Shown: positions 7,316-49,953, counted from the stretch's first letter. The stretch: DNA of 51,878 nucleotides from Octopus sinensis (GCF_006345805.1 NW_021833990.1:1-51878), one strand, 5' to 3'. The notes: a model not told the origin generated them from the letters alone. A program made the numbers and translations.

Positions 7316-7487
7316 AGGAGGCGGCTGAGTGTGTTTGTAACTGTGAGAATGCCCAGAACAATTATTATTATTACTACTACTACTATTATGTTACAGAACG
7401 TAGTATAGAATTCATAAAACACTTTGAAGGAATTTTGATTTTATCGAAGAATATCAAATAACTTGATAAACTTCTGCGTGATGTATT

Positions 7488-14590: not shown

Positions 14591-14619
14591 CATACATACA
14601 TATACAGGACAGTGATTAA

Positions 14620-15030: not shown

Positions 15031-15104
15031 ATGAAACTCATACTGCCGAAGAGAAGAAGAGGGCAGAGCAAGGAACAAGAAAACCCACAAAGAAACAAAT
15101 TCTG

Positions 15105-15550: not shown

Positions 15551-15569
15551 TAACATCGATCATCAAAGC

Positions 15570-19094: not shown

Positions 19095-19930
19095 AAGTTA
19101 ATACATCAGAAATTATGATACTGTTAGTTTAGACAATCTAACTGAAATAGAAGGTTAAGAATAGATTAGTTAGGTTTTTTTCGTAGAATGAGCTTTCACA
19201 TTGTTTTTGACGATGAGTTAACTAAGGCTAACTTCTTAGATATTACTCTTAATTTACAAAATAACTCGTACTTCCCATACACCAAACCTTCCACAAATAT
19301 CAATTATATTAGTCCTTCCAGTAATCTCGCTAGGGCAATTAATAAGAATTTAGTTAAAAACATTTCAGTTAGATTGTCTAAACTATTCGCCAATGTTGAC
19401 ATTTTTAACGACAAGGCAGAATTTTTATAACTCTGCTTTAGTTAAAGCAGGATATAAAGAAAAAGTTACATACATTGATTCTGCTCAATTTCGTCCTTCA
19501 TCTACTGTTCAAGACAAGAAATCTAGTTGTAATAATAAGTGTGATTTTAATTCTAATATTGTAAACAACACAAAACAATAAAATTCCTGTACGGGGTAAG
19601 GGAGGCAAGCGTTATTTAAGGCCATTTTTCCACTCTAGAGGTATTTCACTGTTCTTTAAAGATAATACCGCTTACAATTTGAATGTTACTAGGAAAACTG
19701 TCTGGTTTGTTATTTCGTATGGAAAACAAATTAAATCTAATCTTCCTTTACAATTCCGTGATGTGGTTGCTAGGAACTTTCCAAAAAATTATTAATTCTC
19801 TTATAGTTAGAGTTGCCTTCTCCAACACAAAAAATCTTTCACAAATTATATCTTCTCATAATACCAGTCTGCTAAATAAAAGTCCATTTTCTGGGAGTTA
19901 CAACATTAATTTTATAATTCCAGCCCCTCA
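19095..19930 (+). mobile_element. Penelope-like RT thumb/linker remnant
   Basis: NFLDITLNLQNNSYFPYTKP..NINYI..SSN, YNSALVKAGYKEK, VWFVISY.KQIKSN...ARNFPK, VAFSNTKNLSQIISSHN are typical PLE post-RT motifs. Confidence 0.8.
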
Positions 19931-20013
19931 ATAATATAATAATAATAATAATAATAATATAATAATATAATAATAATAATAATAATAATAATATAATAAT
20001 AATAATAATAATA
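19931..20013. repeat. (TAA)n microsatellite
   Basis: Direct inspection. Confidence 0.97.
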
Positions 20014-21173
20014 AGCACCAGCCTTGACAGCGGCTGGACGTGTTCCTCACTTCTCTGACAGTTCGGTGGCCGAAAGCCATAGAAACACTAATATGGGCCA
20101 GTTTAGCAACGGGGAAAAATAACTCTCAAAGACTGGAACATCTACAATACCTCGTGAGTATTTGAAATTCTCTTCAAAGTGGGTTAAGAAAATTTACAAA
20201 TTTACGTATCTACAGCTTTCAAACATACATCCGATCGGCTTTAAAAACTTTAATACCCACAACTGCCTCTGTAAGCACCCTTTTTTTCTTTTCTTTTTTT
20301 TTTCTTCTCTCTAAAAACATCACGCTTTTCTTTTTTTTCTTTTTGTAGACTTGCAAAACCCTAAAACTTTCTATGAATATCTGACTTTTCTTTGCTTCCT
20401 CCCTGAATATTCAAATATAAATGTAAACATATACTTTTTATTGCAAAAACACACCTGTTCTTCTAACTGGACATACAAACATCTCTAGAGGGGTCAACTT
20501 CAACCTCCACAATATTACCTTGCACGAAATATACAAACACTTTTTATTGCAATAACACAAACGCACATGGAAAAAATAATGATGCTAAGATTCTCTCTGG
20601 TCGAACACAGCTTCTCTATTCACAAATAATACAGAACAGCCCTTCAAAATAAGTTAAGAAAATTTACAAATTTACATATCTACAGTTTTCAAACATACAT
20701 TCGACCAGCTTTAAAAACTTTGATACCCACAATTGCCTCTGTAAACATCCTTTTTTTTTTCTTCTCTCTAAAAACATCACGCTTTTCTTTTTGTGGACTT
20801 TCAAAACCGTAAAACTTTCTATGAAAATCTGACTTTTCTTTGCTTCCTCCCTGAATATTCAAATATAAACGTAAACATATACTTTTTATTGCAAAAACAC
20901 ACCTGTTCTTCTAACTGGACATACAAACATCTCTAGAAAAGTCAACTTCAACCTCCACAATATTACCTTACACGAAATATACAAACACTTTTTATTGCAA
21001 TAACACAAACGCACATGGAAAAAAAAAATGATGATGCTAAGATTCTCTCTGGTCGAACACAACTTCTCTATTCACAAACAATACAGAACAGCCCTTCCTT
21101 AATTTTTCTTAAGGCTAATAGTAGTAAACATCTGAACTTTTTTTGACCACACCCCAAAAAAAAAAAAAAAAAA
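20014..21173 (+). mobile_element. Non-coding module A, poly(A)-ended, with an internal ~470-bp tandem duplication
   Basis: Second copy on minus at 33942-34665 (about 90% identical by eye); begins right after (TAA)n, ends in an A-run at 21156-21173. Confidence 0.75.
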
Positions 21174-21530
21174 GATAGTAATAGTGCTGATATTCTATCT
21201 ATCTATCTACACACACACACATACAAACCTCACCTCGGCTCTATTGTTAACCAAATATGAAAGTATTATTTGACAGGCAAGAACTCTGGCATTGAAGACA
21301 GTCAGCCAGCCAACCACCAAGCCAGCCAACGAGACAGACAGACACTACTGTGATGGTGATAATGATAAAAAAACAAAAATAACAATAATAAGATACTGCT
21401 GTGACTACACATAAAACAATATCATTGATGATGATGGTGGTGATGGTGATGGTGATGATGATAATGATGATGGTAATGGTGGTGATAATGATGATAGTGA
21501 TGGTAATGGCGAAGATAATAACAATAATAA

Positions 21531-24500
21531 GCCGACTACGGCTGCTATAATGGTACGATTATAATTGTAACGGCAATGATGGCCGTCTCCCCACGAGCCA
21601 ATCAAAGCTAAAAAATGATAACATTATCGTAGCACCAAAATGTTTTTGGAAACTAAAAGGAAAACTAAATCAGTATACCAAATCGCTTGTCCTATGGTTA
21701 ATCTGGAAGCGCGTCCCCCAGGGAAGAGCCAGCCTGGGATCGAAAAGTCATCAACTGGCACAAACTCTTCTCCGAATACGGACATGGATGGTCACTTGAA
21801 CGGGAAATCCCCCAACTCGAGCCCTCCAAGTTCACCACCACAACCACCACAGAAAGAAAAATGTAAGCGGAACAAATGGACCCGAGAAGAGTATAAAGAA
21901 GTAATATACGCTTATTACTATGCATTAGGTAGGCCATCTCAAGAGAGACACACCGCAAACTCTTACAGTATATGGGGAACACGGAATCAAGACAGTAGGC
22001 CCTATTTGGACGAGAACAAATTAGCAAATGTGAGGAGGGATATCTTTAGAAATAACAGACTCACAGACAGTGAAATAAGTGCGATCAAGCACGCAACGGA
22101 AAATGACATAAATATAAGACACAAAGGAAATGAAGAATCAGATGAACAGTATAGCCCGCCACGAGGCTTAATTGAAAGACTGCCATCTGACCAAAGTACG
22201 CAAAGGCCTGAAGATACAAGAAATTCTATTGTACCTGTTAAAGATAGCCAGGAAAACGAAAAAACAACAGTAACTGAAGATCTCGCATTTGCTGAAGAAC
22301 ACAGAGAGTCTATGGCAGAAATGAGGCAGAAAATCCTGAATACGCTTGAAGTTGTAAGACATACAAGTATGAATGATAGAGAACCGCTTCATAAACTCTC
22401 AAATACAAACCAAAATAAAAAACAAATCCAAATTGGCAACTATGTAACAAATGAAATAATAAGAGAATTAAAACCTGATTTTACTGAGTTAAATGAAATT
22501 ATTTACGCTTCTGCTAGGGCAATTGAAACCAGCTGTATGCCCCCGAAAAAACAAAGAAAACCAAACCTGGGAAGAAATCAAACCTGGAGAAGTGAAATTG
22601 AAAAAGAGATTGAATTTATGAGAGGGGAAATATCAATATTAAATGAACTAATATGTGGAAATGATGTAAGATCCAGAACAGGAAGAAAGATGAAGAGAAA
22701 ATTTGGATCCTCACCAAGAGAAGAACTGATATCAATAAAAGAAACGCTGAAACAAAAAGTCCAAGCAAAAGCCCAAAGAATACGAAGATTTGAGAAGAGA
22801 AACAAGTTTTACAAGCAAAATAAGCTGTTCACATCCAATGCCAAAAAATTCTACAGAGAAATAGGGAAGGAGAAAGTAACCGTTAAAGACCCCCTCCCAT
22901 GGAAGAAGTTCAAAACTTTTGGGAAAGGATTTGGAGTGACAAGAAGACGTACAACATAAATGCAGACTGGATTATACAAACTGAAGGATCCTACCAAAAT
23001 TTACAACAACAAGCATGGGAAGACATCACAATAGCAGACCTAAGAAAGGCACTTACGAAGGCCCATAATTGAAATCCCCCGGTAAAGATAGGGTACCGAA
23101 TTTCTGGCTCGCATCGCTCCCGTGCGCACACGGTAAGCTAGTTCAGCTGCTCAATGGAATTTTGAGAGACCCAAAGAAAACACCTGAATGGTTAGCAAGT
23201 GGCATTACTTACCTACTCTCAAAGAATAACGAAACCAACCTTCCAAAAAACTATCGGCCTATAACCTGTCTATCCACCACGTATAAAATCCTAACATCTA
23301 TCCCGGCGGAGAAAACATATGCATTCATGGAGAAGAACGATATTTTCCCCATTGAACAAAAAGGGTGCCGCCGAGGCTCTTACGGATGCAAAGATCAACT
23401 GCTAATCAATCGTATGATCCTTGAGAACTGTCACAACAAGCGCAGAAATCTCAGCACCGCATGGATTGACTATAAAAAGGCCTTCGACAGTATACTGCAT
23501 CCATGGATCTTGAGATCGCTGGACATCTTTAAAATTTCCCCTGTGATTTCAAACTTCCTGAAGCACAATATGTCGTTGTGGAATACGAATCTCCAATTAT
23601 ACCACTCTAATGGAGTACTTGCCTCAGAAAATATAAACATCAACTGTGGAATTTTTCAAGGTGACTCACTTTCACCTTTAATATTCTGCATAGCCCTAAT
23701 ACCCCTTACAAGTGAATGAAACAGAACAGGGTATGGGTATAAAATTGCCAATAAAAAAATAAGCCGTCTATTTTATATGGATGACTTAAAACTTTATGGT
23801 AAAGACAATAATGAACTTGAAGGCCTATTGCGCACCGTGAAAGCATTCAGCGATGACATCGGGATGGAGTTTGGACTTGAGAAGTGTGCCAAGGCCACTT
23901 TCCAGAAAGGGAAAGTGAAGACCACAAATTCAGTCGTGTTAGATGTTGACACAGTCATAAGAGAGCTTGAGCAAGAACAGACATACAAATATTTAGGGAT
24001 AAATGAAGGCTCTGGTATTCAGCATGCAAGCATGAAAGAGAAAATCAGGAAGGAATGTTATAGGAGAGTTCGTGCAGTCCTGAAATCTGAAATAAATGCA
24101 CGTAACAAGGTGTTAGCTATAAATTCCTTAGCAGTTCCAGTTGTTACTTATAGCTACAATGTGTTGAACTGGAATATGAGTGAAGTAAAGAATATAGATA
24201 GAAAAATACGCAAGCTGCTGAGTTGTAATAGGATGCACCACCCAAAGGCAGACGTAGATCGCCTTTACCTTCCCAGAGCCCAAGGAGGTCGAGGCCTGAT
24301 CCAATTTGAACTAGCTTACAAAACAACCACAATTGGACTGGCCAAATATCTCGAAATATCGAATGACTGGATGCTAAAGCTCGTGGAAAATCACGAGAGA
24401 CGAAAGAAGCTTCATTCTATCATCAAGGAAAGCAAAACATTTGCTATTGATCTCGTGCAGGATACCCAAATTGAACAACCCGAGGGAAGTACGGCAACTA

Positions 24501-25505
24501 TTGTTGCAAAGAAGGTGAAAATGATGGCAATGAAAAAAGCGCACGAGTAATTGGCTGATAGGTGGGAGGAGAAACCTCTGCACGGCAAATATGTGACCCG
24601 CAGCAAACAAGCTGATGTTGACCAGAAGCAAACCCATCAGTGGCTGCGGAGCTCAGGGCTAAAAGCAGAGAGCGAAGGTTTCATCCTGGCTGCTCAAGAC
24701 CAAAGCCTATTAACCCGGAACTACCAGGCCAATGTGATGAAAAATGGAGCAGACCCAAAATGCCGATTCTGCAACGACATGATTGAAACAGTGGACCACC
24801 TAATCTCTGGATGTAAAGTCTTAGCACCAGTGGAGTATAAATTAAGACATGACAGAGTTGGCTAATATCTCCACTGGCTAATAAGTCGGCATTACAATAT
24901 CAAAACTGCCGACAAGTGGTATAATCACCACCCTGAGGTTGTAACTGAAGGAGAAAATGTAACCATTCTGTGGGACTTTCCAGTACATACAGACCGAACC
25001 ATCAAGGCCAATAAACCAGATATTGTTGTAAAAGACCAAAACAATAAAGTTTGCTTATTGATCAACATGAGCATCCCCTGTGATCAAAATATCTCAGCGA
25101 AAGAGTTTGACAAGCTCAGAAAATATAAAGACCTACTCATTGAAATTGAGAAAATGTGGCATCTCAAGGCGGTTACAATACCAGTGATCGTAGGAGCACT
25201 AGGAATGATCAAGAAGGGAACCGAAAATTATATGAGAATGATCCCTGGCTTACCATCCCTGCAAGAAGTGCAAAAGATTGTCTTAACTGGTACATCACAC
25301 GTATTGAGAAGAGCATTGTCGATGTGAGAACTGTTGCTGCTCATGTATTTTAATTTAACTTTAAAATTAAAAAAAAAAAAAAAAATTAACGAACTACTGA
25401 GTTTGGTTTAATGGCCTACCAATATACACTATGAGTTTCTTTGCCCTAGGAGTCGGGAAGACACTCGGCAAGAAATGGAAGAAAATTTGAAAGAAGAAAA
25501 AAAAA

Positions 25506-25506
<1 letters not shown>
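21531..25506 (+). mobile_element. Near full-length R4/Dong-clade non-LTR retrotransposon (RT + CCHC + restriction-like endonuclease)
   Basis: One ~1200-aa ORF (21640/21694-25327) split by one frameshift (~22900) and four stops (~23070, 23717, 24548, 24863). Motifs: KWTREEYKEVIYAY, KNYRPITCL, GIFQGDSLSPL, YMDDLKLY, CRFC..ETVDHLISGC, KPDIV..CLLI.MSIPCD..K..KY. No APE domain; followed by (TAA)n. Confidence 0.95.
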
Positions 25507-25538
<32 letters not shown>

Positions 25539-25719
25539 TAATAATGATAGCAATAAAAACATGGTTTTGGTCTCTGAGGACAACCCCAACAGAATTAAAT
25601 TTATGTCTAATAATTCTAAGGTCAAGAATTCTATATATCAGTGTAAAATTTCTTGCGGTACTCTGAACTCTTCCATATTCTCTTCTCTAAGAGAATGTCG
25701 AAAGTAATAGCATCTGCGT

Positions 25720-25730: not shown

Positions 25731-25784
<54 letters not shown>

Positions 25785-26432
25785 AATATATATATAATAT
25801 AATATATATATATATATATATATATGATATAATCTAATCTAATCTAATCTAATATAATATAATATAATATAATATATAATATAATAATATAATATAATAT
25901 AGTGTAATATAATGTAATATAATATAATATATAATATAATATAATATAGTATAATATAATGTAATAATATAATAATATAATATATATAATATAATATAAT
26001 ATAATATAGTATAATATAATATATAATATATATAATATAATATAGTATAATATAATGTAATATAATATAATATAATATAATATAATATAATATAATATAA
26101 TAATATATATAATATAATATAGTATAATATAATGTAATATAATATAATAATATAATATAATATAATATAATATAATATAATATAGTATAATATAATATAA
26201 TAATATAATATAATATAATATAGTATAATATAATGTAATATAATATAATATAATATAATATAATATAATATAATAATAATAATATAATATAATATAATAT
26301 AATATAGTATAATATAATATAATATAATAATATAATATAATATAATATAATATAATATAATATAGTATAATATAATATAATATAATAATATAACATAATA
26401 TAATATAATATAGTATAATATAATGTAATATA
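25720..26432. repeat. (TA)n followed by (AATAT)n pentanucleotide array
   Basis: Direct inspection; AATCT, AGTAT and AATGT variants. Confidence 0.97.
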
Positions 26433-26652
26433 AGCCATCTTTCCAAATGTTATCTTCATCGAAACAAGACGGCTTATTCTGTCCCTCTCATAACCTGTCT
26501 CCTTAATGCGTTCAAAATAATTTTTCGTTTCTCATTGTGTTCAACTATTTTTTTGATGTCCTGTACCCATATATGCATGTATACATACATATAGATGTAG
26601 GTATTACATATATGTATGTATATATGCATATATATATATATTATTTATATTA

Positions 26653-28010: not shown

Positions 28011-28204
28011 CTCATAACTTTACTAATTAAAAGATGGTCAACAGGTGCACAAAGTCTTCCCAGATGCTTGTTCAACTCTGATATTATCACACTATCGCAA
28101 ACAGCCGACCCTTAATGGTTCACACAGCTTGTATAAATGTTACACGTGAGATTCTAACAAGCAATTAATCAGCAGTTTATCGCCAATTGATCGATATTAT
28201 TTTT

Positions 28205-28968
28205 GAGTATCATTTTTTTTTCTTCTACCAGTGCACTCAACTTGGTATGTTTACTTCCCGTTGTAAGTTTGATAGTAAAAGTCAATAAGTTACCTACATA
28301 GAAAGACAGTTTTGGTTCTACCATCCGACAATCAATTCTCTTTTGGCTGCTTTCCTCTCTTCAGCTTTGTTACAATCACAAAATTCTCACCATTGATCCC
28401 TTTGGTTTCTGTTTAAATCGAGAGACAATAATTCCATCATATCGTTTCTCAAAACCTGCAATCTGAATCAAACCCTTTACTTCTCCCCAGATTTTCCTTC
28501 CCAATGAACGACCCCCTACTTTCCTGTGAACGAGTATCTGTGACATTCATTGAGCAACTGATTGGTTGCGATGTAATTATTGGTTAATTAATTTATTCTC
28601 ATCTCCTCTTCCTGCTACCACGTTTCTACTCTCAGCTCTCCGCTCCTCTTCCAGACTAATTCATTTATACTCATTTCATCTGTCTCTAAACATTGTTTCC
28701 ATTTTTTTTTCGGTGGACTTGGTTGGTGTGGTGAGGGTTACTCATTTGTTTGTTGGTGTGTGATAAGCAACAGAACATAACTGATTAATAATTTCGTAGA
28801 TCAACAATCTATTGTTTACCTTGTTCTTTCATTACATCCGCCTTCCTTAAGGAAGATGTATTTTTTAAGTCGTGTTTGTTAGTCTGTCCGTGGACAAGAT
28901 TCTCAAGAACCGGTGGATGGATTCGCATGAAACTTTCAGGGATGTTTGGCCTCGTGACTGGCACGAAC
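28205..28968. repeat. Duplicate of 2720-3520, includes the 5' half of the Helentron-type element
   Basis: Colinear match; ends abruptly at GGCACGAAC. Confidence 0.9.
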
Positions 28969-29648
28969 TTCGTCTGGTTGACTGATGAGTAGTAACAGAA
29001 GGCTGCGTCTTCGTATCACGCCGGGGCCATCAATTTATGTAGTGGGAATATATATTCAGTTCCAGGTGCTGATATGGATACGTGTATGTTTACAAGATTT
29101 CATAGAGAGATCATGAATAAATTCAAAAACAATATTTACTACGTAAAAATGTATTTTATTTAATGGTCGTTGATGATACGTAATCAAAATGTAGAATCTA
29201 ATTGAATTAAATAATCTATGCAAGACAGATCAGAGATAGGAAATATGGAAATAACAGCTACGTGGTGATTTTCAGTCATGTGGCGTAGAGAAACAGACAG
29301 ACATAGCAATGACGTGAATGGCTCTAAGTCTAATCGACTGAGAAGTGAAAGCAGGGTTAGCAAGCTGTTTTTATTAATGGAACGCTAGATATTCTAGAAA
29401 CTTCCAAGAGAAACATTAAGCTTCTTGAATAATAAAGAATCCGCTTTCATGGCACAGATGTTTCCAGAACCTCAGTGAAGGGAGACTACTCTATAAACCT
29501 TCTTGCAAGGGACATCATTCAACTATTTAGCTACATAGACCACTACATATATATATACATATATGAGAGAGTGGGAAGGGAGGAGGGAGCTGAGTGTCGT
29601 TGTGACTGTGAGAATGTCCTGAACCAGCAATATTAATATTATTATTAT

Positions 29649-32600
29649 TTTTTCCTTCTTTCTTCAAATTTCTTCCGTTTCTCGCCGAGTGTTTTCCATA
29701 CACCTAGGGAAGAGAAGCTCATTGTATGCATTCCCAGATTACACACGCAAATTCACAGATAAAATATGTATTTAAAAATTAATAAATAAATAAATTCATG
29801 GATGGATGTTATTTTCAAAGCGATAGTGCTCTTCTCAGTACATGAGCCGTTCCAGTTAACACGATTTTTTGCACTTCCTTGTAGGGATGGTGAGCCTGGA
29901 ATCATTTTCAAATAGGTTTCAGTACCTTTTTTTATCATTCCTACAGATCCTACAATCACTGGTACTGTAGTCACCTCGAGATGCCACATTTTTTCAGTTT
30001 CTATTAGCAGGTCTTTATATTTACTAATCTTGTCAAATTCTTTCGCCACTATATTGTGATCACAGGGAATACTCTTGTCAATTAATAAACACATCCTTTT
30101 TGTCTGATCTATTATAATAATATCCGGTTTATTAGCTTTTATAGTCTTGTCGGTCCTCACGGGGAAGTCCCATAGAATCGACACATTTTCTCCCTCAGTC
30201 ACAGCTTCAGGATGATGTTTATACCATTTGTCAGCGGTTTTGATTTTATAATGCCACATATTGTCCAATGTAAATACTGGCCGACTCTGTCATGTCTTGC
30301 TTTATATTCTGAAGGTGCTAAGACTCTACACCCTGAGATTAGGTTGTCTGTTGTTTCAGTCTCCTCGTTACAGAATCAGCATTTTGGGTCAGCTCCATTT
30401 TTCATCACATTGGCTTGGTAGTTCCGGGTTAATAAGCTTTGGTCTTGAGCAGCTAATATGAAACCTTCACTCTCTGCTTTTAGCCCTGAGCTTCGTAACC
30501 ATTGGTGCGTGTGTTTCTGGTCGACATCAGCTTGTTTGCTACGGGCCACGTACTTGCCATGGAGAGGTTTCTGTTCCCATCTGTTTCCTTGCAGCTGCAG
30601 TTGGCGTATTTCCTTCAGCCTGATCAATCTGGTGTGTATCTAAGATCAGCAGCGAATTGTTTGCTCTCTTTGAGAATAGAGTGAAGTTTTTTCGGTCTTT
30701 CATGTTTTTCAACAAGTTTTAGCATCCAATCGTTGGTTGTTTCAAGGTATTTGGCCAGTTCGATTGTGGTGGTTTTGTACATAAGTTGAAGCTGGATCAA
30801 ACCTCGACCTCCCTGAACTCTGGGAAGGTAAAGGCGATCCACGTCTGCCTTTGGATGGTGCATCTTATTACAAGTCAGTAGCTTGCGGATTTTTCTGTCA
30901 ATTTTCATTATTTCACTGGTATTCCAGTTAAGCACATTGAAGCTATATAGAACAACTGGTACTGCTAAGGAATTTATGGCTAACACCTTATTATATGCAT
31001 TCAGCTCAGACTTCAGGACTGCTCGAACTCTTCTATAACATTCCTTCCTAACCTTCTCTTTCATGCTTTCATGCTGGATACCAGAGCCTTCATTTATTCC
31101 TAGGTATTTATAGGTTTGTTCCTGCTCAAGTTCCTTTATTACTATTTCGACATCTAATTCGATTGAACTAGACTTTACCAATTTCCTTTTCTTAAAAGTG
31201 GCTTTGTCACACTTTTCAAGGCCAAACTCCATCCCGATATCATCACTGAATCCTTTCACAGTATGTAATAATGCTTCAAGCTCTTCATCATCTTTGCCAT
31301 ATAGCTTTAGTCATCCATATAAAATAGATGGCTTATTTTTCTGTTGTCAATTTTGTAGCCATATCCTGTTCTATTCAGTTCACTTGAGAGTGGTATAAGT
31401 GCAATGCAGAAAATCAGGGGTGAAAGTGAGTCACCTTGGAAATTTCCACAGTTTATGCTAATGTTGTTTGAGTGCAATACTCCCTTAGAATGATATAATT
31501 GGAGCTTCGTGTTCCATAGTGACATATTACTTTAAAAATCTGATATCACAAGAGAAATTTTGAAAATGTACAGCGATTTCAGAATCCACGAATGTGGTAT
31601 GCTGTCAAATCAATCCATGAAGAGCTGAGATTTCTGCGCTTGTTATGGCAGTTCTCAAGGATCATGCGATTAGTTAAGAGCTGAACTTTGCATCCATATG
31701 AGCCTCGTCTGCATTGGGAATGAGGTTATTCTCTTCCATAAACGTATATGTTTTCTCTACTAGAATAGATGTCAAGATCTTCTAGGTAGTAGATAAACAT
31801 GTTATAGGCCGGTAGTTTTGGGGTCTTTCGTTTTGTTATTTTTGGGAGGAGGTAAGTAATACTATTTGCCATCCAATGTGGTGTTTTTCCGGGTCTTTCA
31901 TAATACTATTAAATAGTATTACTAACATTTTGTGTGCGGACGAGAGTGATGAGAGCCAGAAATTTGGTACTCTATCAATACCAGGGGATTTCCACTTATG
32001 AGCCTTCGTTAGTGCCCTCCTTAGGTCGGCGATTGAGATGTCTTCCCATACCTGTTCTTGTAGATTTTTGTAGTCATCTTGGGTGCGTTTGATCCACTCT
32101 GCATTTTCATTGTATGGTTTCTCATCACTCCAGATCCCCTTCCAAAAGTGTTCAACTTCTTCCATTAGGGGTGGATTTTCAATGGTTATTTTTTCTTTCC
32201 CTATTTCCCTGTAAAATGATTTAGCATTGGATTTGAACATCTTATTTTGTTTGTAGCATCTGATTCTTTTCTCAAGTCTGCGTATTCTCTGAGCTTTTGC
32301 TTGAACTTTTTGTTTAAGTGTTTCTTTCGCTGACATTAGTTCTTCTCTTGTTGAGTGTCCATATTTTCTCATATCTTCCTGCCTTTTCTTGATCTTACAT
32401 AATTTCCAGAGATTAGCTCAGTTATATTGATATCTCCCTTCGCAATTATTCAATTTCAGTTTCAATTCTACTCCTCCAATTTGATTTTCTCTTCGAATTT
32501 GGTATTGTTGGCTTTTTGGGTGTTAAACAGCGTCTTTCGATTACCTTAACGACAGAGTAAATAATTTCATTTAATTTATTAAGATCAGGTTTTAGTTGTT

Positions 32601-33390
32601 GTATGATTTCCTGTGTAACGCAGTTGCCAATTTGTGTTTTATGTTGGTGTGCATTTGAGAGTTTATGGAGTGGTTCCCTATCATTCATAGTTGTATGGCC
32701 TACAACTGCAAGCTCATTCAGAACTTCTTGCTTCATTTCAATGATAGATTTTCTGTGTTGTTCAACAAACATGAGGTCTTCAAATTCTGTTTCGACATCA
32801 TTTTCCGGGCTGTTTTTTCTAGGGTCATTATATTTTCCTACTTCTTCAGGATCTTGAGTCGTTTCGGCAGATGGTCGCCTTTCAGTCAATGCTTGTGGCC
32901 AACATTCCTCTCCTCAGCTTCGTTATTTCTTTCCTGACTTATATTTAGGTCATTCTCTACCACTTATTTAATAGAGGTTAATTCTGCATCTGTGAGTCTG
33001 GTATTTCTGAAGATATCTCTTCTAACATTTGCTAAACTGCTTTCATCCAGGTTTGGTCTGCTAGCTGGATTCCGGCTCCTCCTTGGGCTGGTCTACTTAA
33101 TGCAAATTAATAAGCATATATCTTCTTTATATTCTTCCCAGTTCCATTTAGTTCTTTTACTTTTTTGATTTTCTGGTCGTTGTGGTGGTGAACTTTAGGG
33201 GCTTAATTTGGGACAAATCCCGTTTAAGTGACCTTCCAGGTTCGTATTCGGGGAAGATATTCAGCCATTTGAAAATTTTTCGCCATCAAGCTGGCAGCCT
33301 CCTGACGGACGCGCTTCCTGTATAACCATTGGGCAACCGATTCGGTGTACTGTTAGAAATTTTCTTTTCAAGTAAAGTTAAATTATTATT
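29649..33390 (-). mobile_element. Near full-length R4/Dong-clade element, second subfamily, several frameshifts
   Basis: Minus ORFs give KETLKQKVQAKAQRIRR, WKSPGIDRVPNFW, FQGDSLSPL, LFYMDD, RLYLPRVQGGRGL, KPDIII..IDKSIPCD; roughly 80-85% nt identity to 21640-25327; 3' end abuts (TAA)n. Confidence 0.93.
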
Positions 33391-33475
33391 AAGTTTTCAT
33401 TAAAAAATAAATAAATAGATAAAATAAAATAAAAAATAAATAAAAGATTTAACCACTAATTTTCATATAGGGGCC

Positions 33476-33925
33476 TCATTTATCATCATTAGCAGCCCCA
33501 GTAGTTATAGCAGCAGCAATATCATTGTCAGCAGCTGCAGCGGCAGTGGTAGTAGCAATAGTAATGACCGCAGCAACAGCATCAGCAGCAGCAGTGGTAG
33601 TACCAGTAGTAGTAGTAGCAGCGGTGGCAGCAGCAGCAAAGCAGCAGCAATGGTAGCAATAGTATAGTAGCAGCAACAGCAACAGTAGGGCCGTGGTTGT
33701 AGCAGCAGCATGTAGCAGCAGCAGGAGCAGTAGCAGCAGCAATGGTAGCAATGTAGTAGTAGCAGTGACAGCAGCAGCAGTGGTAGCAGCAGCTACAGCA
33801 GCAGTAGTAGTGGCCGTAGTTGTAGCAGCAGCAGCAGTAGTAGTAGCAGCAGCAACAGCAGTAGTGGCAGCAGCAGCAGTAGCAGTTGTAGCAGCAGTAG
33901 TAGTAGTAGTAGTAGTAGTAGTAAA
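33476..33925. repeat. Imperfect (GCA)/(GTA) trinucleotide tract
   Basis: Direct inspection. Confidence 0.9.
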
Positions 33926-33941
33926 TGTGGCTCATGTAATC

Positions 33942-34665
33942 TTTTTTTTTTAGGTGGGATAGGGGTCCTATCGGTCAAAAAGTTCAGCAGCGAACAGTGA
34001 CCTTAACCTTAAGAAAAATTAAGGAAGGGCCGAGTTACTCTGTTCTGTATTATTTGTGAATAGAGAAGTTGTGTTCGACCAGAGAGAATCTATAATTAGT
34101 ATCATTATTTTTTTTCCATGTGCGTTTGTGTTATTGCAATACAAAAGTGTTTGCATATTTCGGGTAAGGTAATATTGTAGAGATTGAAGTTGACTTTTCT
34201 AGAGATGTTTGTATGTCCAGTTAGAAGAACAGGCGTGTTTTTGCAATAAAAAGTATATGTTTACATCTATATTTGAATATTCAGGGAGGAAGCACAGATA
34301 AGTCAGATTTTCATAGAAAGTTTTAAGGTTCACCAAAGGTAGTCTTTTGTAAGTCCACACAAAGAAAAGAGTGATGTTTTTAGAAAGAATTAAAAGGATG
34401 TTTACAGAGGCATTGTGGGTATTAAAGATTTTAAAGCTGATCGATTGTGTGTTTGAAAACTGTAGATATGTAAATTTGTAAATTTCTTAACTTATTTTGA
34501 AGAGAATTTTAAATACTCACAAGATATTGTAGATATTCCAGTCTTTGAGAGTTATTTTTTTTCCCCGTTGCTAAACTGGGTCATATTAGTGTTTCTATGG
34601 CTTTCGGCTACTGAATTGTCAGAGCAGCGAGGAGGAACACGTCCACCGCTGTGAAGGCTGGCGCT
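33942..34665 (-). mobile_element. Non-coding module A, second copy (no internal duplication)
   Basis: Reverse complement of 20014-21173; T-run at 33942-33951, (TTA)n beyond 34668. Confidence 0.75.
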
Positions 34666-34667
34666 CT

Positions 34668-35843
<1,176 letters not shown>

Positions 35844-36388
35844 GAGTGAGAGAGCAGTGCATGCCATCAAAGTGACACTGGGGTAAAATATACGAAGCCC
35901 AATATACCCATCATGACTACCCGTCTGATAAAGGTACACCAGGCACATGCATCACAACCATATGTGCGCGACATGGTGATCGCATATCAAGATAAACAGC
36001 ACATGACCTTGCAGGTGGGGCCCAATTAGAATTTTCTTCAGGTTGAGTAGCCCATCCCGCTCAAACGGTCCCTGAATAAGGGTTGTTTAAGGATGTTGAA
36101 AGAACTACCCATGTTTCCAGAGGTGAACTATTCAAACCCCAAAGAATCCCTCTCAACACATGGCTATGATGCTCCCCCACTACTTCTGCTCATGATCAGA
36201 GATGCACATATCGTCAGCCACTAAGGGACATGCTCAACTGGTTACGGTCAAACAACTGTCAAGCAAATCTGTGGTATTGAGCAGAATATTTGCTGTAGCC
36301 CTCTTTTATACCAAGACAAAACAATGTACATGATACACTTCCAATCAGTTAAGATCAGAAGCCATGAGAGCCACTGCCTGGTACTGCA

Positions 36389-36390
<2 letters not shown>
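35844..36390 (-). mobile_element. Non-coding element B, copy 2
   Basis: As for 34949-35501. Confidence 0.8.
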
Positions 36391-36755
<365 letters not shown>

Positions 36756-36756
36756 A

Positions 36757-37879
36757 TATGTTTGACTTTTGCTTTATGTTTGTACAAGTTGGCTCCAAGT
36801 CTCACCCAGAGACCTCAAGAGACAACAGGTTGGAAGTTCATGTTATTGTTATGCCTAGTGTGCCATATATTTGGGGGTTTTTTTGTGTTGTACTAGTGAA
36901 TGTCTAATAAATAAATTTAAAAAAAAAGAAAAAAATGTTTGTTTTAAACCTTGAGATTACATAGAGAGTATTTTGCGTAGGATATGAGCAGTTCCCATGA
37001 GCACTATCTTTTGAATTTCTGCCATTTTGGGGTTTCCTGGTATCTGAGTTAGGTAGCAATCAGCCCCTTTCGCTATCATTCCCAGGGAACCTATGACAAC
37101 AGGTATTGTTTTAGTCTTCAGCTTCCACATTTTGCTGATTTCTATTTCAAGATCTTTATATTTGCTCAGTTTTTGGTAGCTCTTGACAGATACGTTTATA
37201 TCGATTGGGACAGTCATATCAATGAGGAGGCATGTTCTTTATTTGAAGTCTTTTAATATGATGTCTGGCCTATTTGCATCTATTTTTCTGTCAGTTTGAA
37301 TGGTGAAGTTCCAGAGGAGTGAGATGTGGTCATTTTCAAGCACACTGGAGGTGGATTGTGTTCCCACCAGTTTTTTTCATTGGGGCAAATCCAGGTTTTT
37401 GCAAATTACCCAGTGAATATATTGTGCAGCTCTATCATGCCTGTTGAGGTACTCTGTAGGCGCTAGAAGACTGCACTTGGAGACAACATGGTCAATGGTT
37501 TCATTTTGTTGTCGACATACACGACATGTTGGGCTACTGCCGTTCTTTAATATGTTGGCCTGGTAGTTTCTTGTTGGTAGGCATTGATATTGAGCTGCTA
37601 TGATAAACCCTTCTTTTTCAGATTTTAAGCCATAGGCCATTAACGATTGTTGGGTCAGCGCTTTGTCAATATCTGCATTATTCGCTCTCTTTGGGTATTT
37701 GCCATAAAGAGGTTTTTCTTACCATTTATTATTCAGAATATCTAAGGCCGCAGTTTTGGCACGGGTTTTCATGCGCTTAGATTTTTCTGTGCTTTTTTCT
37801 CGTATGACTATCTCTAATTCCGAAATTTGTTGTATTCGGAATTCACTTAGATATTCCTTTGCCTGTTTTGTTACTGAGT
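36757..37879 (-). mobile_element. 5'-truncated R4/Dong-clade element (third subfamily)
   Basis: EKPLYGKY, GLKSEKEGFIIAAQ, CRVCRQQNETIDHVVSKC, RPDII..CLLIDMTVPID..KLSKYKDL, VLMGTAHILRKILSM; both ends abut (TTA)n. Confidence 0.92.
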
Positions 37880-37929
37880 ATTATTATTATTATTATTATC
37901 CTTATTATTATTATTATTATTATCATTAT

Positions 37930-39685
37930 TCAGTAGTCTTATTTTTATAGCGTGCTTTCACTTCACTACCGAGCGCAGCTCTGTGTGCCTTGGGTATGTG
38001 CTGTGATTTGTTGTGATGCTCTGATGGTTATTGTATGGAAAGTGTTCTGCGTAGGAGGTGTGCAGTGCCTAGTAGTGCAATTTCTGTATGTTATATGTGT
38101 TTGTAAGTCCTGGTGTTTTTGTTATGTATTTGTCTGAATATTTTCTTATCATGCCTAATGCACCTACTATGATAGGAATTGTTTCTGTTTTCAGATTCCA
38201 CATTCTAGTTACCTCTATTTCCAGGTCTTTGTATTTTGAGAGTTTCTCCATTTCTTTTAGAGACACGTTGTCATCTGCCGTATTGATACATCAATTAGAA
38301 AGCATTGTTTTTCTTCATGATCTCTGACAACTATATCTGGTCTGTTGGCCTTAATTTCTCTATCCGTGTGTATCGGCATATCCCAGAGTATGGTTGCTTT
38401 CACGTTTTCTGTGACCTTTTCTGGTGTGTGCCTATACCATCTTTTTTCTGTTGTTATTCCATAATGTTGGCATAGCTTCCAATGTATGTAGGTTCCAACT
38501 CTGTCATGTCTGTGAATATATTCCTTCTTAGCCAGGACTGGGCAGCCAGAGATAATATGATTTATTGTTTCTTGTCCATCTCCACATATTCTGCAGTTAC
38601 TTGTAATATTTCTTTTCATTACATGTTTTTGGTAATTTCTGGTGGGGAGGCTTTGGTCTTGTGCTGCAATTAAAAATCCCTCTGTTTCTGCTTTGAGTCT
38701 GAGCTTCTCAACCATTGCTGGGATTTTTCTTTGTCTATTTCTTTTGCGCTTAGTTTAGTCCAGTATTTACCATGAAGGGGCTTTTCTTGCCATCGTTTTA
38801 TCATGGTTCGTTGCTGTTCTATTTTTAGTTTGGATTTCATTTGTTTTATAGCTTTTGTTGTTTCTTCATCTTCTTCTTCTTCTTCTTGTTTATTAGGTGG
38901 TATGATTTCTTGTTTGTATTTGTCAGCTTCCTTAAATACTGAGAACAGTTTTTTTGTTTTGCTCGTGTTTTGCCGCTATCTGGATCAGTTTTCCTTCCTT
39001 CTGAAGTAGATATTTTTGCAGTCCTATGGTGGTTATTTTATAGTAGTTTTCCAGCTGTATAAGGCCTCTACCACCTTCTATACGTTGTATATATAGTCTT
39101 TCTATGTCAGATTTTGGGTGATGCATCCTAGATCCTGTCATTATTTTTCTTGTTTTCCTATCTATTTTGGTCAGTTCATTTCGTGTCCAGTTAAGGATAT
39201 TGTAGCTGTAACTATAACTGGGACAGCTAAAGTGTTGATACCTATTATCTTGTTTTTAGCATTGAGCTCTGTGTTTAGTATTGATCTAACTCGTCTATAA
39301 TATTCTTTTTTTATTTTCTCTTTCATTTGTGTGTGTTGTGTCTTATCTAGTTCATGGATTCCTAAGTATTTGTAAGTTTGGCTTTGGTCTAATTCTTTTA
39401 TTTCATTGGTTTTATCTAGTGTGATGTTGTTACTCTTAACTAGTTTTCCGCTTTTCAGGGTTACTTTGGCGCATTTTTCTAATCCAAATTTCATATCTAT
39501 TTTTTTGGTAAATCCATGAACTGTCTTTAATAGTGTTTCCAGCTGTTTGTCATTTGGCCTTTCTTCTTTCTGTGGCTGTCTTCAGTTAGGCTTTATTAAT
39601 CATTAGTTGATCTTTACAGCCATATGAGCCTTTGCGGCATCCTTTCTGCTCTTCTGGGAACAGTTTGTTTTCGTGCAGGTGCTTG
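37930..39685 (-). mobile_element. 5'-truncated, internally deleted R4/Dong-clade element (fourth subfamily)
   Basis: EEQKGCRKGSYGCKDQL joined to LKTVHGF..MKFGLEKC; HHPKSDIERLY; CRICGDGQETINHIISGC; RPDIVVRD..FLIDVS; both ends abut (TTA)n. Confidence 0.92.
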
Positions 39686-39693
39686 TCCAGTGC

Positions 39694-39776
<83 letters not shown>

Positions 39777-39825
39777 ATTATTTTATTATTATTATCATCA
39801 TCATCATCATCATCATCATTATTAT
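39686..39825. repeat. (ATT)n/(ATC)n tract
   Basis: Direct inspection. Confidence 0.97.
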
Positions 39826-39859
39826 ATTATACACTGTAGTTAATAATCCATAAAAGACC

Positions 39860-42070
39860 CTGAAGTACCTTTAATCTTATTAAAGAATATCAAATAACTG
39901 GATTAACGTCTCCGGCATATGCATTAATTCTTTCGATAATTTTATCTAACATGGTTATTGTTAACCTACGATTTGTATTTATTATAGACAACAATTTAGG
40001 TATCATAGACGTCATCAATATCAAAGTAATCCTTGTGAACGCTGATAAGTTCAAGTCTTCTCGACTTATTATATTGTTGCAAGCAAAGAAAAAAGATACG
40101 ATATAGAAACAGTTTTATAATGGATTTACCAATCTCGTATCTCAATGGAAAATGATGTTAACAATTGTCTTGAACAGCTTAGCGTTTATGAATTCCTCTC
40201 CATAGCTTGACTGAACCAAACTTGGACAAACAGTTTTGGTGAGGTGAGTTTTATAGACTGAAACTATTATTGAGTTATACTGCTTTATGATGGCGTTCAC
40301 AATTGCAACGGTATACACAAAAAACATGGCAAACAACCATACGTCACTGACATTATCAGGTTCAGTAAGAATTGTAGCAGCTATCGTAAATATGAAATTG
40401 CATGATGATTGAAAACTTGTAAGAAATTATAGATTGTAACGAGAGTCCATAAAAAATACAATGGAAAGCAATAGACAAGTAAAAAATACAGCAGTAATCT
40501 TGAAAATACGAGAATTATTCGTACAGAGTGAGAAGATATAAACTTTAGAATAATGAAAGGTAAAGTTAAACTCAGATAATTAATTGGATTCCATAATAAA
40601 CGAGGCACAGAAATAATTCGCAGACAGAAAATACAGCAATTAAAATTGTAATGGAAACAAAGAGCCAAAGTGTAATGAATTTCCAGAAAATATTTCTCCA
40701 AATTTTCTTTATACGGTTAATCCAAGTATAAATTATTAAATACCAGAAATTTGGGTTTAGAGCCAGAGAAATATTAGCTTTCATTACTGCATAGAGTAGA
40801 TCATAATCCTGTAGTGTAGAAACATTTAAATTGCCATACTTCTGTAATAATCTCATATTTTGAATGAGAAACGTGAAAGTGGATCCTTGGTGTAATGTAT
40901 TATAAGCGACAGTCTCACTTGCTCGACTGGGAAGAACGAAGAGGATAAAATAGAAACATACGTAACAGATTAACCACACAAAGGGACCACCAAACCAGCC
41001 ATCAGTATTCTCATAACTTTCTGGGATTCCGAATATTAAGGCGCGATGTCCCAATGGTATACCATCCTGGTAAAGAATTTCTATTGTTTCATATAAAAAG
41101 AAGTAATGCATCAAAAGATCCAGGAAAATTATTGAAAGAGAAGATAGAATAAAAAAGAATCTTCTTAATTTTGAGGCCAAGAAAGTGGAATGATGAAAGC
41201 AAAATAACCAAGACAGAAAAGGGGGAAATTGTAAGTATTATGGTTTTCGTTGATCCATTCTAATTGGTATGGCAATGTGTTTGATGGGAAATGAAGGTGA
41301 TTTCGTTAGTGAAAGAACACTAATAATTAAGGGAAAATATGCCCATACAACAGTTCCGACGATATTTGCATATTGAGAAACATACTATTTTCCATGATAT
41401 TTCCAGAAACAATGATTTTGGGTTTTGGGTAATAAACATAGCTTTCATTTTTATAGAGTTTACAGCAATAGTTCTTCACCAACTCTCTATTTATACCGAT
41501 TCTTCTGTTAGCTTTTAATGACTCAGGGCTGTTCTTCTTCATATCCTGAGATAAATTTATTAGAAAACACATGTAACCAGATTCTCCCATTTTTAATGTA
41601 TCGATCACTGAGATTTTCTTCAATTCCTGGAAAATCAAATGTATTAAATCATATCTCTGAATATTTTCTTTCCCACAATTTATATCGATATCAACCCTTG
41701 GAGTAGCAATGTAAGCTCCTAATAAATTCAAAGAGTAAATTTAAAAATCATAATAGAAATTCTTATACGCTATTAAACCATCTGGTTCGTCTGGAATCCA
41801 GGTAAATTGTCTCGCGTTTGCGAAATAATCCAGTCGTACGGGTTTCAGAAGGTCATCAAGTTTTTTGTCGGATAAATGGACATCGAGATTGAAAACCCTT
41901 TTGTCTGATCTTACTAAACTAGATAAAATCTTATGAACATGGGGAAATCTTATTTCACAGTTATTTCCAAGTTCCTTCGCTTCTATGTTTAGTGATATTT
42001 GAACGACAATAAAAGTAATCACAAGGAAAAGTGAACTGCTTGTTGTTATCGTCATCTGCATGGCAGCCAA
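39860..42070 (-). pseudogene. Orphan multi-pass membrane protein, copy 2 (more disrupted)
   Basis: ORFs 41741-42070, 41327-41731, 40572-41180, 40381-40701 and 40142-40336 tile the same protein as copy 1. TCA>TAA at 41741-41743, several frameshifts, start codon altered (AATATTGGCT vs AATATGGCT). Confidence 0.82.
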
Positions 42071-42568
42071 TATTTCGTTTTCTGTAAGAGAAAAACAAGA
42101 TAGATAGAAGTCATAAAATATTGAAGATTCATTTTAGTTTCGTATTTTGTAAATATTTGAAATAAAAAGTATTTACTTAAAATGAATGTAAATCTATTTT
42201 ATCATTTATTTACTAGAAAAACAAATGTTGTGGCCAGCGGAGCAGAGGTCATATTGTATTTTGTGCTTTGCAAGTTCCTATTTAGTTGTAATATTTCGTA
42301 ATTGAACTCGAATGAATTTTTGTGAATTTCTTGGCTGCAAGAAATAGAGATTTTTCATGACTCGAATTTAGGAATGTAAATTATTGTATCAAAATGTGTA
42401 TAACTTGAGATGAATCTTACCCTGATCATATCTGAAATGAACTGCACATGCAGGAATCTAGATAATGTGTGTAATTTAAAAGAAAGTGTTTCTTATTGAG
42501 TAGTAGAACAAGGCAGGCGGATGAACTCATAAATGCTACAAAGGTTTTATAAGCTCCATTTGCTGTCC

Positions 42569-42987
42569 ATTTGCTTGACAGTTGTTTGACCTTAACCAGT
42601 TGACCATGTCCCTTAGTGGCTGACGATATGTGCATCTCTGTTCAAAAGCAAAGTAGTGGGGGAGCATCATAGCCATGTGTTGAGAGGGATTCTTGGGAGT
42701 TGATTAATTCACTCTGGAAACATGCGTGTTTCGTTCAACATCCTTAAACACCCTTATTCAGGGACCTTTTGAAACGGGATGGGCTACTCTACCAGAAGAA
42801 AATTCTTACTGGGTCCCACCTACAAGGTCATGTGCTATTTATCTTAATATGAGATCACCATCTCGCACACATATGGTTGTGATGCATGTGTCTAGTGTAC
42901 CCTTATCAGACGGGTAGTCATGATGGGTATACTGGGCTTCGTATATTTTACCCCAGTTTCACTGATGGCTTTCACTGCTCTTCACTA
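42569..42987 (+). mobile_element. Element B, 5'-truncated diverged copy
   Basis: Reverse complement of most of 34949-35501; followed by AATAATAAC and (CAT)n. Confidence 0.8.
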
Positions 42988-43654
42988 AATAATAACATTT
43001 CATCTTATCATCATCATCATAAATCATCATCACATCATCATCATCATCATCGACATCGCACAATATACATTATCGTGAGGTTGTGTGACTGAAGATATCG
43101 TGTCTACCGGGGGTTTGTACTATTTGTCAAGTCACAACAAGAACCTCAGACAGACAGCATTTTACGCATAGGCATGCAGTTCCAGCTAATGCCGACTTTT
43201 GCAATACAATAGATTGTAGGCTATTCCTAAAGTTTTCAGATATTTTTTTCAGATTGGGCGATATTCAAACCAATGTTCCGATAACAATAAGAATAAACCT
43301 AATATAAAAGAGACATTTATTGAATAAATTATCTGAAGTACTGCTCTTCTCTTTCATATAAGTTCTTTCATTTAAGTAGCCATCTCGTATTTTTCTGGCT
43401 CATATTGGTTAGGAGGGCTAATACATATAATTAACAATTAACAGAGTTACTTGACCAGCACTTCAAATAACTAAGTGCAGTGAACAGAAAACCCCAAAAA
43501 CTATAATTATAGTTCATACACATCCTTGTTTAGATAAAAAATATTAAAAACTTTCTTATTCCTCTTTACACCAGAGAGAGGAGAGAGGTTGCAGTATAAT
43601 TTCAAGGTCTCAATGAGTTTTACTGTGAGCAATACTTGATATTAATCGAGTGTG

Positions 43655-49400: not shown

Positions 49401-49429
49401 TACTCTTTAATTATAAGCTAAGACTCATG

Positions 49430-49469
<40 letters not shown>

Positions 49470-49504
49470 ATATAGATTTACGGAATGTAGTAGCTCAGTA
49501 GCTG

Positions 49505-49890: not shown

Positions 49891-49953
49891 ATATACATGT
49901 ATATATAATATATTATATATATATATATATATATATGCATCCATATGGTGTAT

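Follow-up and report, generated by a model that had tools for sequence, protein, structure and literature searches.

How a trinucleotide microsatellite of 29 bp downstream of one gene copy comes to be matched, downstream of a second copy, by 10.2 kb of retroelements is the question raised by a 51,878-nucleotide stretch of octopus DNA (GCF_006345805.1 NW_021833990.1:1-51878), called here, at its full length, the window. The filled site holds a stack of long interspersed nuclear elements (LINEs) and of short elements of a second type, element B, in the 3′ flank of gene copy 2; beside copy 1 of the same gene the site is empty. Taken together, the anatomy and orientation of the stack, the domain content of its LINEs, the empty orthologous and paralogous sites and the statistics of LINE junctions make it highly probable that a duplicated gene has in its 3′ flank a single (TAA)n microsatellite that was struck five separate times by (TAA)n-specific retrotransposition.

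The site is delimited by flanking sequences that the two gene copies share. On the left, 37 of 44 bases are identical without gaps between 7316-7360 and 29581-29624 (local score 30, with a maximum of 17 in 2000 shuffles). On the right, 7390-7514 aligns to 39831-39950 with a score of 50 (null maximum 20 in 2000 shuffles), and the paralogy extends collinearly between 7515-9540 and 39935-42163 at 77-89% identity. The paralogous left flank is just ~45 bp long, since in copy 1 a (TAGG)n array (7030-7315) lies immediately beyond it. Between these flanks copy 1 contains ATTATTATTATTACTACTACTACTATTAT alone (7361-7389, 29 bp), whereas beside copy 2 a total of 10,200 bp (29630-39829) separates the unique anchors that delimit the stack, CTACAGTGTA on one side and TGCTGGTTCAGG on the other. 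Another pair of similar segments, 2724-3517 and 28200-28968 (94% identity), was considered as paralogous flank and rejected, as it represents a dispersed transposable element (TE) that is present in the O. sinensis locus L003 and absent at the orthologous point of L006. The insertion point of the copy at 28200-28968 coincides with the exact end of F-block orthology.

In O. sinensis the same anchors enclose only an array, 196 bp of pure (GAT)8(AAT)n in L006 and 199 bp of the same array in L005. L006 9028-11907 matches window 42560-39694 at 95.8% identity, L006 11947-12624 matches window 29649-28974 at 98.2%, and the left junction, at which AATAATATTAATAT meets TGCTGG, is letter-identical in the window and in O. 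sinensis. Judged by these alignments, L006 (with its duplicate L005) is the O. sinensis ortholog of copy 2. L003, which is 97.7% identical to the copy 1 region across 7.9 kb, is the ortholog of copy 1, and its site is likewise empty, with 35 bp compared with 29 bp in the window. Through these paralogous and orthologous counterparts one site becomes visible in three states, of 29 bp, ~200 bp and 10.2 kb. A first-pass annotation of this DNA, made by a model that was not told its origin, had proposed that the flanks recur around the site and that an empty and a filled version of it can be contrasted. The recurrence is borne out, both alignments scoring above all 2000 shuffles, and the contrast is strengthened by the orthologous empty site. 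When the same site was sought in other paralogs (L004, L007, L008), their 3′ flanks proved to be non-homologous, and a look-up of two window open reading frames (ORFs; 40572-41180 and 38257-38715) in other assemblies for a second individual returned no record, as did one of P0130 (O. vulgaris). L005 and L006 are near-identical 21.7-kb segments that lie 8 Mb apart on CM016859.1 (213.36 and 205.01 Mb), one of them near the chromosome end. Gene and empty site are the same in both, and the pair reflects a recent segmental duplication or else duplication in the assembly.

LINE bodies were placed by tblastx, blastn and tblastn, and trinucleotide arrays by Tandem Repeats Finder (TRF). The fill resolves into five insertions, three LINEs and two copies of element B; every one lies on the minus strand, between (TAA)n-type arrays (Table 1). 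Elements (9,007 bp) and arrays (1,193 bp) account for exactly 10,200 bp, and no element is nested or interrupted. The ORF of LINE1 carries ~9 frameshifts and 11 stops (tblastn); LINE3 holds an intact ORF of 152 amino acids (aa) with CCHC and PD..D..K motifs. A second full-length Dong-type LINE, the solo insertion LA, is far less decayed (two frameshifts, four stops) and is ordered as (TAA)n, a 5′ untranslated region (5′UTR), an internal trinucleotide tract, an ATG with an ORF of ~1,230 codons, a 3′UTR and (TAA)n. The first-pass annotation had counted six units in one orientation between trinucleotide tracts, the sixth being a ‘module A’ (34040-34713), to which the LA 5′UTR is similar. The three LINEs, the two B copies, the orientation and the bounding tracts stand, but module A was rejected as a separate element, because it is the 5′UTR of LINE1 (34040-34670 within LINE1) and has the same arrangement in LA; the insertions therefore number five, not six. 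A (GCA/AGT)n tract at 33570-33923 was also rejected as a target array, being an internal microsatellite of the LINE1 5′UTR. The (GAT)8 start of array 5 is also present in the O. sinensis array. Arrays 1-3 share a block pattern in the sense strand, consisting of (AAT)n, ~20 (GAT) and 13-19 (AAT) just 5′ of the next element. Over 401 bp, LA is 99% identical to an O. sinensis copy (L003 1-401) whose orientation to the neighbouring gene is reversed, and from this identity the LA family looks recently active.

Table 1. Coordinates of the stack, its flanks and related features in the window.
Feature	Position	Strand	Description
Paralogous empty site, downstream of gene copy 1	7360..7389		(ATT)4(ACT)4(ATT)2, 29 bp
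Solo insertion LA	19930..25555	+	(AAT)n 19930-20014, LINE 20015-25506, (TAA)n 25507-25555
Left unique flank	29589..29629		Anchor ...GAACCAGCA; aligns to 7324-7359; 28974-29649 matches L006
Residual left target-array end	29630..29649	-	20 bp, sense AATAATAATATTAATAT; identical to left end of the O. sinensis array
LINE1, full-length, Dong-type	29650..34670	-	~5.0 kb; blastn/tblastx to LA, tblastn with P0001
LINE1 parts	3′UTR 29650-~29817; decayed ORF 29818-33377; 5′UTR 33378-34670	-	
Array 1	34671..34948	-	(TAA)n with (TGA)n block, 278 bp (TRF)
B1, non-autonomous, (TAA)n-tailed	34949..35500	-	552 bp, full 5′ end TGCCCTGATGCAG
Array 2	35501..35843	-	(TAA)n/(TGA)n, 343 bp
B2	35844..36390	-	547 bp; 5′ end 5 nt shorter than in B1 (without TGCCC), start TGATGCAG
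Array 3	36391..36754	-	(TAA)n with (CAA)n and (TGA)n blocks, 364 bp
LINE2, 5′-truncated, Dong-type	36755..37878	-	C-terminal 305 codons (CCHC and restriction-like endonuclease, 3 stops) and ~200 nt 3′UTR
Array 4	37879..37930	-	(TAA)n, 52 bp
LINE3, 5′-truncated, Dong-type	37931..39693	-	Mid-reverse transcriptase to restriction-like endonuclease
Array 5, right target-array end	39694..39829	-	Sense (GAT)8 then (AAT)n, 136 bp
Right unique flank; gene copy 2	39830-39913; 39914-42070	-	39694-42560 matches L006, 95.8%
B3, older 5′-truncated B	42569..42995	+	90% identity, ends TAAATAATAA then (ATC)n

Stacks of repeats invite the suspicion of an assembly artefact, here either a chimeric join or mis-scaffold within the (TAA)n arrays of the window or, conversely, an O. 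sinensis assembly in which the stack has collapsed. The inner arrays (278-364 bp) are hard to assemble, the G2 segment occurs twice in O. sinensis (L005 and L006), which suggests assembly problems, and the two genomes align poorly beyond the gene blocks. On the other hand, each end of the stack is tied to unique, orthologous sequence by a short array (20 bp and 136 bp), so at least LINE1 and LINE3 lie between the anchors; all element-array junctions resemble normal insertion junctions elsewhere; and both O. sinensis copies are empty, with different array lengths. An artefact is thus very improbable as an account of the locus as a whole, misassembly of the outer elements being unlikely and that of inner joins possible.

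The LINEs carry the signature of a family that encodes a restriction-like endonuclease (RLE). Downstream of the reverse transcriptase (RT), LA, LINE1 and LINE3 contain a C-x2-C-x7-H-x4-C knuckle followed by (K/R)PD(I/V)..(D/N)..K, and the Pfam matches in the LINEs are RVT_1 and zf-RVT. Database searches recovered >2,600 homologues, many of them intact single ORFs of 1,200-1,240 aa and mostly from marine metagenomes. The closest named LINE homologue is from a coral, and the only solved-structure matches of an intact homologue are R2 proteins (E = 4e-28 to 1e-15). These domain motifs and R2-only structure matches place the family among the RLE LINEs but outside R2 proper. Features of the R2 clade itself were absent, as the target is (TAA)n, Rfam detected no rRNA in the window, and Pfam detected neither a zinc finger nor a Myb domain at the LINE N-terminus. 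R4/Dong elements are organised as one ORF in which RT is followed by a CCHC knuckle and a PD-(D/E)xK RLE, with no APE domain, and the octopus LINEs have this organisation. From this architecture, the target and the published octopus repeat annotation, we infer that the LINEs are R4/Dong-type. Abundant octopus RLE LINEs are classed as Dong-R4 in published annotations (PMC13282606, PMC10294476, PMC9115989). The group is almost cephalopod-specific among molluscs (PMC10294476), and in O. vulgaris, with 5 families and 1,129 insertions, it exceeds all other recently active LINE groups in abundance (PMC13282606).

Within this type the elements are diverse. LINE1, LINE2 and LINE3 share 51-59% amino acid identity pairwise in their C-terminal 200-280 aa, so that three old LINE lineages share the site, while LA and LINE1 are 81% identical. 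The LINEs also contain a conserved N-terminal domain (LA 21640-22959; alignment A1) with the pattern (K/R)W(T/S)REEY...W...NKLANVRRDI, in which W16, Y21, W48, K63, R69 and I71 are invariant in the alignment. AlphaFold2 predicts this domain as a confident four-helix unit (predicted local distance difference test score, pLDDT, 88.8); its best structural neighbour, the DNA-binding domain of S. pombe Sap1, is a weak match (E = 1.3). The domain is a candidate target-recognition module. More distant RLE LINEs are also found in the sampled sequence. Within the window, 10505-18625 contains a tandem duplication of ~4 kb (10913-14262 / 15099-18625) with fragments of a distant RT/RLE LINE that are 24-40% identical to LA at the amino acid level and have no (TAA)n tail. 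In O. bimaculoides (L008 19497-20095), a distant RLE LINE with 39% amino acid identity C-terminally ends directly in a long (GAA)n; it may represent a related element that targets another microsatellite.

Target specificity was assessed in a junction census of ~160 kb of octopus sequence, comprising the window and L003, L004, L006, L007 and L008. Sense (TAA)n lies within 220 nt of the ORF end at 10 of 11 observable LINE 3′ ends and antisense-only repeat at none, compared with a background in which 3-14% of positions have a sense run within 250 nt by chance. One further LINE copy is cut by another TE and its 3′ end is unreadable. Sense (TAA)n adjoins every one of the nine observable LINE 5′ junctions, whether full-length or truncated, and all four LINE copies in the window have it at both junctions, the pattern of a Dong target. 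Homologues from other hosts, on metagenome contigs, are flanked by sense (TAA)n as well: two contigs each carry two LINEs head to tail, separated by (AAT)12 (L001) and by an array of ~100 bp (L002), and two others show a (TAA)9 tail (L009) and a (TAA)8 5′ flank (L010). Further sense-oriented octopus stacks occur at L003 1-5458 and L007 17597-20314. The junction behaviour is that of Dong/R4-type elements, whose (TAA)n specificity has been published for silkworm, mosquito, snail, ostracod and cnidarians (PMC3812793, PMC7998251). Two proposals of the first-pass annotation accordingly hold up, namely that several divergent LINE subfamilies share the site with a passenger (element B), and that the insertions show Dong-like (TAA)n specificity with strand bias. 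The check that it had suggested at genome scale, on the share of LINE junctions in (TAA)n and their strand bias, comes out as predicted in this small sample.

The O. sinensis stack at L003 1-5458 is made of the same families in a different order, lies 4.5 kb upstream of the copy 1 ortholog and has no counterpart in the window. It opens with the 3′ end of an LA-type copy, followed by (ATA)n, a B copy that is truncated, (AAT)n and a LINE2-type copy of 2.1 kb; then come an array of 374 bp, a B of full length, (AAT)n, a 765-bp LINE3-type 3′ piece and an (AAT)n(ATT)n junction. It was rejected as an ortholog of the window stack, from which it differs in element order, truncation points and genomic position.

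Element B is ~550 bp long and non-coding. All nine copies end in CTC(T/A)CACTC and pass directly into (AAT)n, and in four of them TGCCCTGATGCAG starts right after (TAA)n; the 5′ ends of the others are either a few nucleotides or ~110-120 bp shorter, two copies being 5′-truncated. Between them, window and O. sinensis copies show 97.7-98.5% identity and stand ~1% from the family mean, and from this identity the family is young. B thus combines hallmarks of LINE-type insertion with a LINE-like tail, as a short non-coding retroposon does. ARAGORN, and Rfam searches over B1 and B2, found no tRNA-, 5S- or 7SL-like head, which sets B apart from short interspersed nuclear elements (SINEs) with an RNA polymerase III head.

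The sequence of events that these features suggest draws on what is known of RLE LINEs, specifically R2 (PMC10499050) and Dong (PMC3774820). An element would be transcribed along with flanking repeat and its 5′ end released; the element-encoded endonuclease would then nick one strand of the (TAA)n target, and the (UAA)n-tailed RNA would be reverse-transcribed from the nick through target-primed reverse transcription (TPRT). Each insertion would leave repeat on both sides, open to another strike, and new repeat could come from the RNA tail or from later microsatellite growth. Such a cycle would give a single orientation, an absence of nesting and sense (TAA)n flanking every unit. B, for its part, might be mobilised in trans by the LINE protein.

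Repeat content agrees with such a cycle in one respect. The filled site contains ~1.19 kb of repeat and its empty ortholog ~0.2 kb, a ~6-fold difference. The two outer arrays together (136 + 20 = 156 bp) are close in length to the intact O. sinensis array of 196 bp, and the four inner arrays contribute ~1.04 kb beyond them, so the new repeat arrived with the insertions or grew later. The first-pass annotation had described the site as a ‘self-amplifying sink’. The ~6-fold gain supports the regeneration of target, and to that extent the sink; a higher insertion rate as its consequence, the self-amplifying part, is plausible but would be an extrapolation from one site and a few other stacks. We put forward, tentatively and with considerable doubt, the further idea that (TAA)n arrays, Dong-type LINEs and B act together as an accordion, and a fast one, in which each target-primed insertion imports ~200 bp of target, occupied arrays attract more insertions, and recombination between the co-oriented arrays can remove the entire pile at once.

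Several results weigh against the reading of five separate strikes by Dong-type elements and a passenger, and they concern the name of the LINEs, the relation of B to them, and the manner and age of assembly. As to the name, the presumptive clade label was reached by a route other than RT phylogeny against R4, Dong or HERO references. R4/Dong elements have an N-terminus with a divergent Myb/SANT-like domain and no zinc fingers (PMC7998251), whereas the N-terminal domain of the octopus LINEs gave no Myb/SANT match by hmmscan against Pfam, Foldseek against the PDB or a PDB profile search. R4/Dong elements also carry a self-cleaving ribozyme like that of hepatitis delta virus (HDV) at their exact 5′ end (PMC3774820). 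Rfam yielded no HDV-like 5′ ribozyme, either at its gathering threshold or with E <= 10 allowed, and Rfam searches over the 5′ ends of LA, LINE1, B1 and B2 returned merely spurious A-rich matches (CrcZ, snoRNAs). A hand-written HDV-like descriptor, for which the human CPEB3 ribozyme served as positive control, matches LINE1 only, 3 nt past the array; 31 of 200 shuffles also match, and the LINE1 candidate is not shared by LA, L001 or L002.

These two unconfirmed features leave room for the LINEs to belong to another RLE clade, chiefly HERO, which would change the name and keep the mechanism. HERO includes microsatellite-specific families (PMC4640811), and Hero and CRE types have been reported in cephalopods (PMC10294476). 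Yet in molluscs and cnidarians Dong is published as targeting (TAA)n (PMC7998251), recent O. vulgaris insertions of Dong-R4 outnumber those of Hero by 1,129 to 13 (PMC13282606), and LINEs of the present family are abundant in every sampled octopus locus, with the coral homologue as their closest named relative. Membership in HERO or a similar clade is accordingly improbable.

With regard to B, no unique 3′ sequence is common to it and any window LINE, the shared part being the (TAA)n tail. From this tail, the sole sequence in common, we infer that LINE machinery may mobilise B by way of a (UAA)n tail. As to the manner of assembly, the stack could have arisen mainly at the DNA level, by unequal crossing-over, by tandem duplication of an array together with B, or by ectopic conversion or transfer of a pre-formed block. 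B1 and B2 are adjacent and 98.5% identical, arrays 1-3 have the (AAT)n-(GAT)~20-(AAT)13-19 pattern in common, L003 repeats the succession in which a LINE2-type copy and a full-length B stand next to each other with ~370 bp of array between them, and that O. sinensis stack of the same families stands upstream of gene copy 1. The recurrent adjacency and the shared array pattern hint at some DNA-level copying. The details of the stack speak differently: B1 has five 5′ nucleotides (TGCCC) that B2 lacks and that match the full 5′ end of four other copies, the identity of B1 and B2 is not above that seen across species and loci (97.7-98.4% for dispersed copies), element order and LINE truncation points differ between stacks, and the blocks that make up the array between LINE2 and B are not the same in each. 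Given their different 5′ junctions and an identity that matches that of dispersed copies, B1 and B2 are best read as two insertions rather than a tandem duplication, and assembly of the stack mainly at the DNA level is unlikely.

The age of the stack bears on the proposal of insertion into a site that O. sinensis kept in its original state. LINE1, with ~20 disruptions, and LINE2, whose copies are ~94% alike, both seem to be of greater age than the O. sinensis split, so part of the stack may predate it. If all or part of it does, the empty O. sinensis site would be secondary, the product of array recombination or slippage or of a sorted ancestral polymorphism, and the site would behave as an accordion, growing by insertion and collapsing by array-array deletion, rather than as a one-way sink. 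The lesions of LINE1 fall within 3.7 kb, or ~5 disruptions/kb; by comparison, pseudogene G2 has ~16 disruptions in 2.2 kb with both lineages summed. LINE2-type copies (L003, L004) are 93.5-94.6% alike, compared with a unique-flank divergence of 1.8-4.2% between the species. The arrays form direct repeats of 52-364 bp, an ideal substrate for deletion, and the O. sinensis array is long (196-199 bp) and differs between the two assembly copies. Other evidence fits a younger stack. B, at ~1% from its family mean, and LINE3, whose copies are 96-97% alike, are sufficiently young for insertion after the split; the outer arrays (156 bp) approximate the 196 bp of O. sinensis, as simple insertion into an existing array predicts; and defective copies can be mobilised in trans, while subfamily structure inflates pairwise distances. 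Alternatively, therefore, the old-looking copies were inserted recently. A stack that predates the split, in whole or in part, is a serious possibility without being the outcome we would expect, and five separate (TAA)n-specific insertions remain the preferred account.

Lesions are found in both copies of the neighbouring gene. Copy 1 (9451-7491, minus strand) shares 95% identity with O. sinensis LOC118765918, which encodes an intronless 740-aa protein of an octopus-expanded family, and has two stops and one frameshift beside an empty site. Copy 2 (39914-42070, minus strand) is a pseudogene of the same 740-aa family with at least seven stops and several frameshifts, and its O. sinensis ortholog, also beside an empty site, already contains a premature stop, its annotation being that of a truncated protein of 569 aa. 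The first-pass annotation had tied the insertions to a gene copy ‘that then decayed’; copy 1 and the O. sinensis ortholog of copy 2 are lesioned at empty sites too, and no causal or temporal link of the stack to gene decay is demonstrated.

The octopus LINEs resemble Dong (Bombyx mori; DongAg, DongBg) and R4 in having a single ORF of RT, CCHC and PD-(D/E)xK RLE without N-terminal zinc fingers and a (TAA)n target with sense repeat at both ends, and Dong/R4 elements are found in molluscs and cnidarians (PMC3812793, PMC7998251, PMC4640811). They differ in their long 5′UTR (1.3-1.6 kb) with an internal microsatellite, and in that the HDV-like 5′ ribozyme and the Myb-like N-terminal domain of Dong/R4 are unconfirmed in them. 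R2 proteins (8gh6, 9dou, 9nl3) are the nearest solved relatives, aligned from RT to CCHC (E ~1e-28), and share the logic of RLE and TPRT and of a multicopy ‘safe’ target; the octopus target, however, is a microsatellite rather than the 28S rRNA gene, sequence similarity is low, and no N-terminal zinc finger or Myb domain is detectable with Pfam in the octopus LINEs.

Most RLE clades have a specific target, and Utopia is known to insert in tandem (PMC4640811). Co-oriented insertion into a repetitive target is likewise a trait of TRAS/SART (telomeric repeats), Utopia (U2 genes) and Kibi/Koshi/Togen/Waldo/Mino (microsatellites), unlike which the octopus array is shared by divergent LINEs and a passenger and has an orthologous empty site. 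As with the poly(A) tails of L1/Alu, a retroelement tail supplies or seeds a microsatellite (PMC3812793), but L1/Alu tails create repeat at a non-repeat target, whereas in the octopus the repeat is both target and tail, which makes feedback possible. B resembles the SINE of a SINE-LINE partnership in being short and non-coding, with 5′-truncated copies, variable 5′ junctions and a LINE-like tail and target; it differs in lacking a tRNA, 5S or 7SL head and any LINE 3′ sequence beyond (TAA)n.

Away from the stack, blocks 1-9780, 28974-29649 and 39694-42560 of the window are 96-98% identical to O. sinensis and the remainder is scarcely alignable, which implies that TEs turn over the intergenic sequence very fast, or else that the assemblies differ; the TE at 28200-28968 is one example. 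The window further contains a 700-bp (ATATA)n (25732-26433), (TAGG)/(CATA)n arrays (13373-13552 and 16868-17171, in addition to 7030-7315) and an inverted repeat pair (49347-49936 / 51044-50447, 95.7%).

The stack is largely the expected behaviour of a known repeat-targeting family, and what is known of that family is unchanged. Useful additions are the orthologous empty site, the element count, the recognition of module A as a 5′UTR, the young passenger B, the ~6-fold gain in repeat and the question of gain versus loss. The locus provides a well-anchored natural example of microsatellite-specific LINE behaviour, and its empty and filled sites are suited to tests of target recognition by an RLE LINE other than R2. 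If the accordion is real, it would explain a 10-kb presence/absence difference at a locus that is otherwise 96-98% identical, and would make B a passenger recognised by its microsatellite tail alone. If the behaviour is general, Dong-type elements would explain the abundant long (TAA)n tracts of octopus genomes, as well as a class of large recurrent octopus structural variants that could be miscalled as assembly errors.

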